A program made the translations under genes and the position numbers. From Octopus bimaculoides (Eukaryota), in the NCBI RefSeq assembly GCF_001194135.2, contig NC_068983.1, positions 85,013,240-85,065,013 of the forward strand: a DNA stretch of 51,774 bases, read 5' to 3'. Numbering within the stretch: position 1 is the stretch's first letter; every line of letters starts with the position of its first letter. The notes beneath the pieces are model-generated. The model ran no database searches. It had not been told where the DNA came from and saw only the letters and a program-made list of their open reading frames with translations. Positions 15,164 through 15,778 of this stretch are shown one piece after another.

Positions 15164-15778
15164 TTACTTGTCAGTGTGATGTAAAGAGTTTCTTAAACGA
15201 GCTGATCTATCATTGAAGTCATTGACGTCGATCGGCAGTACTCCAGATAGGTTGTTGTTGTTGTTGCTGTCGCTGCTGTTGTTCTTATATCTTTTATACT
15301 GTTTCTGCAATAAGTTCTGAAGACGGCTGCCTTCCTTCTGACTTCTTGTGTTGCTGTTGGGGATGCGGATATCACCTGGTAGAAGTTGATCATTGTTGGA
15401 GTTCATCTGTTCTGAGATGGCCCTTCTGAAGAGGGCCTCATCCCTCACTGGATATAACATCTGGTTTCCTGTAGTCGCGTCGTTGTCATCGTAATCGTTT
15501 TGCTGTGCGCTCTGTCTTTGTATGGGCAAAGACCCGGATAGGTTTTCAAAATAACTTTGAAACGGATTGTAATTATCGTCTGTGTTAATGGTGCCGAATT
15601 CTTGTCGCTTGTATTGCCCGTCCGATCTTTTGCCAGCGAAATGGAATGCATTGCAACGACATAAATTGCCCCCTCTACCAACAGCACAACGAGTCTTACA
15701 GAATGTCTTCACGTCAAAAGACTGTACAAAGACCACAAAACACATGGCTACAATGAAGAATACTCCTTGTCGGCACAT
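15164..15778 (-). CDS. Secreted neuropeptide precursor: 4-Cys peptide ending in HFA-amide (HFAamide/CCRFamide-like)
   Basis: Intact 204-codon frame of non-repetitive sequence; aaaaATG context with no upstream ATG in the exon. Hydrophobic signal peptide MCRQGVFFIVAMCFVVFVQS, then FDVKTFCKTRCAVGRGGNLCRCNAFHFA followed by G-KR (amidation plus dibasic cleavage). Further KR/RR/KR sites and an acidic, Asn-rich propeptide follow. Confidence 0.88.
   Translation of the reverse strand: MCRQGVFFIVAMCFVVFVQSFDVKTFCKTRCAVGRGGNLCRCNAFHFAGKRSDGQYKRQEFGTINTDDNYNPFQSYFENLSGSLPIQRQSAQQNDYDDNDATTGNQMLYPVRDEALFRRAISEQMNSNNDQLLPGDIRIPNSNTRSQKEGSRLQNLLQKQYKRYKNNSSDSNNNNNLSGVLPIDVNDFNDRSARLRNSLHHTDK

Follow-up and report, generated by a model that had tools for sequence, protein, structure and literature searches.

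A predicted HFAamide proneuropeptide gene in Octopus bimaculoides

Cleavage at a Gly-Lys-Arg (GKR) signal followed by C-terminal amidation is the chemistry of prohormone convertase, carboxypeptidase and peptidylglycine alpha-amidating monooxygenase (PAM). HFAamide received its name in 2013, when a study of Platynereis dumerilii introduced it as a family of lophotrochozoan proneuropeptides (Conzelmann, 2013; PMC3890597). It was later reported to be widespread among nemerteans, brachiopods, and phoronids (Thiel, 2021; PMC8557429) and was described in the oyster Crassostrea gigas as Cragi-HFAamide (PMC8398477). Here we analyze a stretch of 51,774 nucleotides from Octopus bimaculoides (contig NC_068983.1, positions 85,013,240 to 85,065,013; hereafter the window, in whose own numbering all of its positions are given) and report that LOC106873001, a gene on its reverse strand, is with high confidence the octopus orthologue of the HFAamide proneuropeptide gene. 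The family has been established since 2013; what is new is that, judged by sequence, octopus LOC106873001 is a member of it.

For the oyster orthologue, mass spectrometry (MS) of the ganglion peptidome recovered AFSVQKFCENACNRGLGGNLCRCNGFHFA-NH2, amidated and full length from signal cleavage to amide (PMC8398477). The entry is listed as AFSVQKFCENACNRGLGGNLCRC(+57.02)NGFHFA(-.98) (PMC8398477), and our mass arithmetic reproduces it exactly (3218.4531 Da). In Platynereis, an in situ hybridization signal for HFAa was recorded in 3-day larvae, in a study that mapped proneuropeptide expression in the larval neurosecretory center. In the literature that could be searched, we found no cephalopod member that had been named, and database labels for such members read "uncharacterized" or "hypothetical". 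The supplements of one mollusc survey (De Oliveira, 2019) are without HFAamide; a 2026 preprint sought O. vulgaris orthologues when building molluscan neuropeptide models, HFAamide included.

LOC106873001 and the HFAamide family

An intact open reading frame (ORF) of 204 codons spans 15778-15164 (-) and is 100% identical to XP_014775688.1, annotated in O. bimaculoides as "uncharacterized protein LOC106873001 isoform X2". Its beginning, 15778-15626 (-), translates to MCRQGVFFIVAMCFVVFVQSFDVKTFCKTRCAVGRGGNLCRCNAFHFAGKR, which consists of a signal peptide, a 28-aa peptide and GKR. The four Cys residues of the peptide, Cys27/31/40/42 (codons 15700-15698, 15688-15686, 15661-15659, and 15655-15653), form the frame C-x3-C-x8-C-x-C. 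Close orthologues, likewise unnamed, are present in O. sinensis (LOC118761014) and O. vulgaris (CAI9719846.1). An Argonauta hians orthologue (locus L001) with 65% identity is labelled "hypothetical predicted protein", and a further locus, L002, holds a distant relative of the octopus precursor with 34% identity. Neither LOC106873001 nor its protein accessions nor the peptide strings turned up in any paper of the searchable literature.

The published sequences of Platynereis (FEYNGYCQKMCRWGRGGNLCKCNAVHFAGKR), Lineus (…FCRIMCARGQGGDACRCNAVHFAGKR), and Novocrania (…YCSNKCPLGQGGNVCRCNAVHFTGKR) align with the octopus sequence across the core without a gap, and alignments over five phyla leave C27, C31, G34, C40, C42, F47, G49, K50, and R51 invariant. 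Within the loop G34-R-G36-G37-N38, which starts with one of these invariant residues, G36 and G37 are at least 90% conserved, and N38 is invariant among database relatives. The segment from the fourth Cys to the Gly has six residues in octopus, N-A-F-H-F-A, and conforms to the family ending [H/K/Y]-F-[A/V/T]. The octopus gene thus shares with the family a single copy of about 28 aa directly after the signal peptide, the C-x3-C-x8-C-x-C frame, the G-x-G-G-N loop, the C-N-A-x-H-F-A end, and GKR, as well as a long, poorly conserved acidic/polar propeptide downstream. It differs from most members in having Phe45 where Val is usual (NAFHFA rather than NAVHFA); Phe also stands at this position in Argonauta and in one other sequence (P0014), and the oyster ending is NGFHFA. 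Two other differences from the family are a cephalopod-specific conserved C-terminal propeptide, and a stop codon that overlaps the splice donor to alternative short terminal exons.

We built a family profile of 31 core positions and searched it against 1.84 billion proteins, with representatives taken at 50% identity. The profile matched 157 cluster representatives, and 142 of the 154 looked at carried the complete motif. The loop between the second and third Cys is eight residues long in 144/144 motifs, the spacing from the fourth Cys to the Gly is six residues in 142/144, and the Gly is followed by KR in 128/144. HFA is the commonest motif terminus (85), with HFV, KFA, YFA, and HFT next. 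The first Cys has a median position of residue 34 in 142 family proteins, just past the signal peptide. Given that the octopus sequence has every one of these profile-derived features, its membership in the family is established at the sequence level.

These results bear on a preliminary description of the same DNA, which had read 15626-15778 as a Cys-rich peptide with Cys27/31/40/42 and G-KR, encoded directly after the signal peptide, and had pointed to an HFAamide family known from lophotrochozoan surveys. Translation confirmed the peptide to the base. The family is indeed present in such surveys (PMC3890597; PMC8557429; PMC8398477), and octopus matches all of its conserved positions, while the order of signal peptide, peptide and GKR cleavage with amidation is what MS showed in the oyster orthologue. 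The comparison with known precursors that had been proposed there returned E = 5e-15 in pairwise BLASTP against Platynereis HFAamide (45% identity over 49 aa, covering signal peptide and peptide) and 65 bits, E = 5e-19, with the family hidden Markov model (HMM) among 2752 six-frame segments, the next segment of the window scoring E = 0.4. The Cys frame and GKR, which orthologues had been expected to keep, are invariant in the family alignments. For LOC106873001 and for its orthologues in O. sinensis, O. vulgaris, and Argonauta, the label can be changed to HFAamide precursor. The range of a spiralian-wide orphan neuropeptide, among the most sequence-conserved lophotrochozoan peptides, thereby comes to include cephalopods, whose brains are the largest of any invertebrates.

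Purifying selection on the gene was estimated by the method of Nei and Gojobori over 192 codons of octopus and Argonauta hians. Overall, dS was about 1.0 and dN 0.16, giving an omega (dN/dS) of 0.16. By region, omega was 0.37 in the signal peptide, 0.20 in residues 52-140, and 0.115 in residues 141-204; for the peptide together with GKR it was about 0.04, an approximate value, since dS is saturated. All six differences between the Octopus and Argonauta mature peptides fall at positions that vary in the family, while O. bimaculoides, O. sinensis, O. vulgaris, and a fourth octopus-like sequence have one and the same mature peptide. These comparisons point to strong purifying selection on the gene. 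In a six-frame HMM scan, the window and the 20-kb orthologous loci yielded exactly one copy apiece (E = 5e-19 to 2e-18), and the next-best matches over all loci were noise (E of at least 0.03).

The window is AT-rich animal DNA (38% GC) with many TG/CA microsatellites that translate to Cys-rich strings, and one could therefore suspect a chance ORF or a decaying pseudogene whose Cys pattern stems from low complexity. The bare pattern C-x3-C-x8-C-x-C in fact occurs five times in the six frames of the window, and the four matches outside the gene are translations of TG/CA microsatellites or of a Cys-codon-rich repeat (among them 9808-9855, 20417-20472, and 47945-47992 (+)). Once a Gly-dibasic signal is added to the pattern, only 15626-15778 remains. 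The TG/CA repeats of octopus DNA are thus a trap for motif-only scans. The 204-codon ORF is intact, its dN/dS is low while dS is about 1, its family HMM score stands far above that of any other segment, and orthologues occur in at least four octopods and in a more distant relative, with the splice donor conserved. We rejected chance or decay on the dN/dS against Argonauta and the HMM score, and consider the probability of such an origin to be negligible.

Several proteins related to the family have more than one module. P0003 and P0007, which are metagenome-derived, are true HFAamide precursors with two full copies (…CNAVHFAGKR twice), against the family's single-copy rule. In P0105 (652 aa), a trypsin-like protease domain is preceded by three tandem HFAamide-like modules, which read C.ELCASGDGGDLCNC and are not amidated. 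P0156 (217 aa) has tandem C.EWC.NG.GGAFCDC modules, P0160 (147 aa) has two divergent copies, and in P0099 (239 aa) a canonical HFAamide is followed by short THFGGKR repeats.

Predicted processing, fold and alternative roles of the peptide

The octopus precursor, a preproprotein of about 204 aa, would enter the secretory pathway by a 20-aa signal peptide cut at VQS/FDV. A prohormone convertase would then cut after K50-R51, a carboxypeptidase would trim both basic residues, and PAM would turn Gly49 into a C-terminal amide. The predicted product is a single 28-residue peptide, FDVKTFCKTRCAVGRGGNLCRCNAFHFA-NH2, with four Cys in two disulfides, which would be released as a neuropeptide or hormone and act on a receptor. 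The signal peptide contains a single basic residue, R3, and its hydrophobic core covers residues 9-17 (mean Kyte-Doolittle 3.2). Its cleavage site, which agrees with the (-3,-1) rule, lies exactly 6 residues ahead of the first Cys. Of 15 family members, 12 permit a site at -6, which in every one of these gives a 28-residue peptide, and the oyster MS peptide begins at -7 relative to the first Cys (PMC8398477). The octopus peptide is basic (net charge +4, pI about 9.3), and its predicted monoisotopic mass, amidated and with two disulfides, is 3115.463 Da. Octopus offers a tractable neuroanatomy together with an exact mass target for peptidomics and receptor deorphanization.

A cystine-stabilized helix carries a Cx3C pair on a helix that is bonded to a CxC pair (Ci-Cj, Ci+4-Cj+2). 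Peptides of this kind include scorpion K+ channel toxins and insect defensins (Cx3C...CxC) as well as apamin and endothelin (CxC...Cx3C), and the octopus peptide has the same two pairs. It resembles them further in being small and basic, in being, as predicted, amidated like apamin, and in a predicted N-terminal helix that bears the Cx3C pair. In the AlphaFold2 model of the peptide, made from a core alignment of 13 sequences, residues 3-12 are helical (predicted local distance difference test, pLDDT, about 75), carry Cys7 and Cys11 of the Cx3C pair, and are followed by a Gly-rich turn. This helix is compatible with a cystine-stabilized arrangement, with the Cx3C pair on an N-terminal helix, then the Gly-rich turn, then the CxC pair, in which C27-C40 and C31-C42 would be the most likely disulfides. 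The octopus peptide differs from cystine-stabilized helix peptides in its inter-pair loop of only 8 residues, in having no third disulfide, and in matching none of them in the Protein Data Bank (PDB) by sequence or fold. From what is established about these peptides, it may fold like them; the comparison is one of likeness and not of membership.

Several observations weigh against reading LOC106873001 as the precursor of a folded, neuronally released peptide. Processing, neuronal expression and the type of receptor are matters that we infer for octopus, and the signal cleavage site is predicted from rules and conservation. The AlphaFold2 model of the full precursor is mostly disordered (mean pLDDT 48), that of the peptide is of low to moderate confidence (mean pLDDT 70), and its CxC segment has no predicted strand. 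Foldseek returned 0 matches for the peptide model in the PDB, and a sequence search of the PDB found no relative. Because relatives by sequence and fold are absent there, the CxC strand is not predicted and the models are of low to moderate confidence, the pairing of C27 with C40 and of C31 with C42 remains one that we infer by analogy. Oyster HFAamide is expressed mainly in larvae, with low levels in ganglia and mantle (PMC8398477), so that a purely neuronal role in the adult is not guaranteed. Finally, a 2026 paper on Conus tabulates receptor and function as unknown for the family (PMC13542836), in keeping with the two-disulfide orphan neuropeptide of the preliminary description, a reading that our results support. 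The PDB sequence search paired GGNLCRC only with the 2Fe-2S loop in CO dehydrogenase (E = 0.52), a match that we rejected as chance.

Another family with a comparable design is CCRFamide of Platynereis and Lottia, to which the preliminary description had likened this gene. The likeness holds for the layout: both are lophotrochozoan and single-copy, and both encode a four-Cys amidated peptide right after the signal peptide with a G-KR end. It does not hold for the Cys frame and the C-terminus, as CCRFamide has, in the Platynereis sequence (CQAFCKANFQGEQHIACLTDIC...SRFGKR), the spacing C-x3-C-x10-C-x4-C, and has a longer tail and an RFamide terminus. The octopus peptide has neither this frame nor a C-terminal R-F-amide, and our searches detected no sequence similarity between the octopus precursor and CCRFamide.

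The same description had raised a toxin-like role in the salivary gland. The peptide would then be a secreted "doppelganger" toxin, an HFAamide derivative that the posterior salivary gland had taken over to interfere with the signalling of prey. Such recruitment has a precedent in Conus, which expresses HFAamide-derived doppelganger toxins that were confirmed in the venom of C. textile (Mol Biol Evol, 2026; PMC13542836), and a small, basic, disulfide-rich, amidated peptide with a channel-toxin-like Cx3C...CxC frame would suit it. The Conus toxins, like the octopus gene product, are secreted and belong to the HFAamide family. As described, however, they are venom-gland paralogues with a 5' untranslated region (5'UTR) of a conotoxin superfamily (O2) and diverged toxin regions, whereas the octopus gene is a conserved endogenous orthologue that retains the canonical family sequence. 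Its mature region is under purifying and not diversifying selection, at the low omega given above, the peptide is the same in three Octopus species, and there is one copy, with no tandem array, in the window and in each orthologous locus. Indirect evidence on expression comes from a survey of cephalopod venom glands with an HFAamide model in its search set, which reported no HFAamide hit; the mimics it listed were of stanniocalcin, luqin, myosuppressin, tachykinin, and neurotensin. Membership of the octopus gene in the Conus-type venom toxins is not supported, and we regard a salivary toxin as very unlikely.

The Cx3C/CxC frame is also common to CS-alpha-beta defensins. Together with the positive charge and high pI of the octopus peptide, this likeness would suit a role not in signalling but in host defense, as a cationic, defensin-like antimicrobial. 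So would the oyster gene, which is expressed in larvae and mantle and at a low level in ganglia (PMC8398477). The processing signals, however, are of the neuropeptide type, and amidation was verified in extracts of oyster ganglia. Expression of the Platynereis gene was mapped in situ in the larval nervous system. The gene is single-copy, and its extreme conservation over five phyla is unusual for immune effectors. An antimicrobial role is thus extremely improbable, and we favor a signalling peptide of the HFAamide family.

Propeptide, terminal exons and upstream sequence

The features of the gene and its flanks are collected in Table 1. The propeptide has dibasic sites at K57R58 (15610-15605), R118R119 (15427-15422), and K162R163 (15295-15290). 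Its C-terminal third, residues 141-204 (15358-15167; QKEGSRLQNLLQKQYKRY…LSGVLPIDVNDFNDRSARLRNSLHHTD), shows conservation nearly at the level of the peptide, with a dN against Argonauta below that of the HFAamide region. The motif QKEGSRLQNLLQKQYKRY...LSGVLP is common to Octopus and Argonauta and is partly present in P0004.

Table 1. Coordinates of LOC106873001 features and conserved flanking sequence in the window
Feature	Position	Strand	Evidence
Main coding exon, HFAamide precursor gene LOC106873001	15168..15778	-	ATG 15778-15776; ORF list, XP_014775688.1 match, isoform tails
Signal peptide MCRQGVFFIVAMCFVVFVQS, 20 aa	15719..15778	-	Predicted cleavage VQS/FDV
Predicted mature HFAamide FDVKTFCKTRCAVGRGGNLCRCNAFHFA, 28 aa	15635..15718	-	Translation, family alignments, omega, mass
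GKR: amide-donor Gly and dibasic prohormone-convertase site	15626..15634	-	Invariant G49, K50, R51; oyster MS
Propeptide, residues 52-204	15167..15625	-	Dibasic site list, omega
Splice donor GTAAGT	15162..15167	-	Overlaps last Lys codon and stop (GAC AA/GTAAGT; GT 15167-15166)
Candidate alternative terminal exon	8291..8308	-	Strong acceptor AG 8308-8307 (in CAG) after polypyrimidine tract; six-frame search
Conserved 5' flank or 5'UTR	15779..15927	-	(CAA)n tract, A at -3 of ATG
Conserved non-coding block	17384..17594	-	1.6-1.8 kb upstream of ATG; blastn 72% over 213 nt, colinear with Argonauta
Second non-coding block	17663..17796	-	70% identity, colinear with Argonauta

Read without splicing, the gene ends at a TAA (15166-15164) and encodes 204 aa; with splicing, the exon ends at 15168. 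The sequence AAGTAAG at the end of the ORF is kept in Argonauta hians (L001, about 10571-10585) and in L002 (about 10652-10666), and annotated isoforms split exactly at this donor, where …HHTD is continued by K-AGRR, N-HLTATMLEHRL, N-IKFL, N-Y, or a longer tail. Since the donor is conserved at the stop in Octopus, Argonauta, and L002, it is probable that each of the ORF-based calls (192, 204, and 219 aa) leaves out a short terminal exon. The variants leave HFAamide itself untouched.

One candidate for such an exon lies in the window. Positions 8306-8291 read T ATA AAG TTC TTG TAG and, joined to the trailing AA of exon 1, would encode N-I-K-F-L-stop. This tail exactly matches O. sinensis isoform X2 (XP_036354547.1) and is not among the O. 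bimaculoides isoforms seen (X1 and X2). The K-AGRR and N-HLTATMLEHRL terminal exons are absent from the window, and the 10-kb flanks downstream of the gene in Argonauta and L002 likewise lack a terminal exon with a Gly-dibasic signal. The missing exons may lie beyond the window or inside assembly gaps. The window contains 19 runs of N (6318 N, 12% of its length; e.g., 10118-10811, 13335-14259, 20736-21612, and 26466-27308), and gaps of about 2.2 kb in total lie downstream of the gene in five runs (the first two of those just named, 7712-7972, 9210-9489, and 7008-7083).

Annotation pipelines may be affected by such an arrangement, in which the donor overlaps the stop, the terminal exon varies and the tail is conserved. 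The oyster HFAamide gene stands under an accession of the non-coding-RNA type (XR_002200086.2) though its peptide was detected by MS (PMC8398477, supplement file 2), which illustrates how easily small precursors are mis-annotated.

The conserved tail is also the basis of one of two further, non-exclusive readings. The C-terminal propeptide, with its low omega and its position beside the conserved K162-R163, could yield a second, lineage-specific bioactive peptide, which would make the cephalopod precursor bifunctional. The C-terminus of that second peptide would be switched by the choice of terminal exon: the K-A-G-R-R tail of O. bimaculoides X2 and O. vulgaris creates a putative second Gly-dibasic amidation signal (…HHTDKA-NH2), and the N-IKFL, N-Y, and N-HLTATMLEHRL tails have no amidation signal. 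According to the other reading, suggested by analogy with the toxin-like Cx3C/CxC frame, HFAamide may act on an ion channel and not on a G protein-coupled receptor. If true, such an action could explain why HFAamide continues to be an orphan. Platynereis is known to have channels gated by peptides (bioRxiv 10.1101/261990). Even taken jointly, we hold these two readings to be rather unlikely.

Upstream of the gene, a colinear blastn block shared with Argonauta reaches 149 nt beyond the ATG, despite a dS of about 1. Farther upstream, the conserved non-coding block includes a stretch of 33 nt, GACACGCCCATTGAATTAAGTAAGTCAC, that is identical in Argonauta, and has a donor-like end, GG/GTGAAG. This block could serve as a promoter, as a non-coding first exon, or as both. 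Antisense over the gene, a 134-aa ORF with CCCCCC runs (15582-15986 (+)) is the reverse reading of the (CAA)n tract and is unsupported as a gene.

Repeats and other sequences of the window

Rfam and tRNA scans of the window gave no match. Two other ORFs, 2250-2807 (-) with 185 aa and 43698-44129 (+) with 143 aa, presumably resemble C-terminal fragments of a retrotransposon ORF. An element of about 100 nt occurs in multiple copies in the window (33652-33747, 21866-21962, 35854-35965, 48154-48265, 12175-12250, and 13024-13097) and looks like a short interspersed nuclear element shared by octopods. Further copies of it are found in the Argonauta locus L001, at about 12791-12903, 11005-11090, and 5000-5114.

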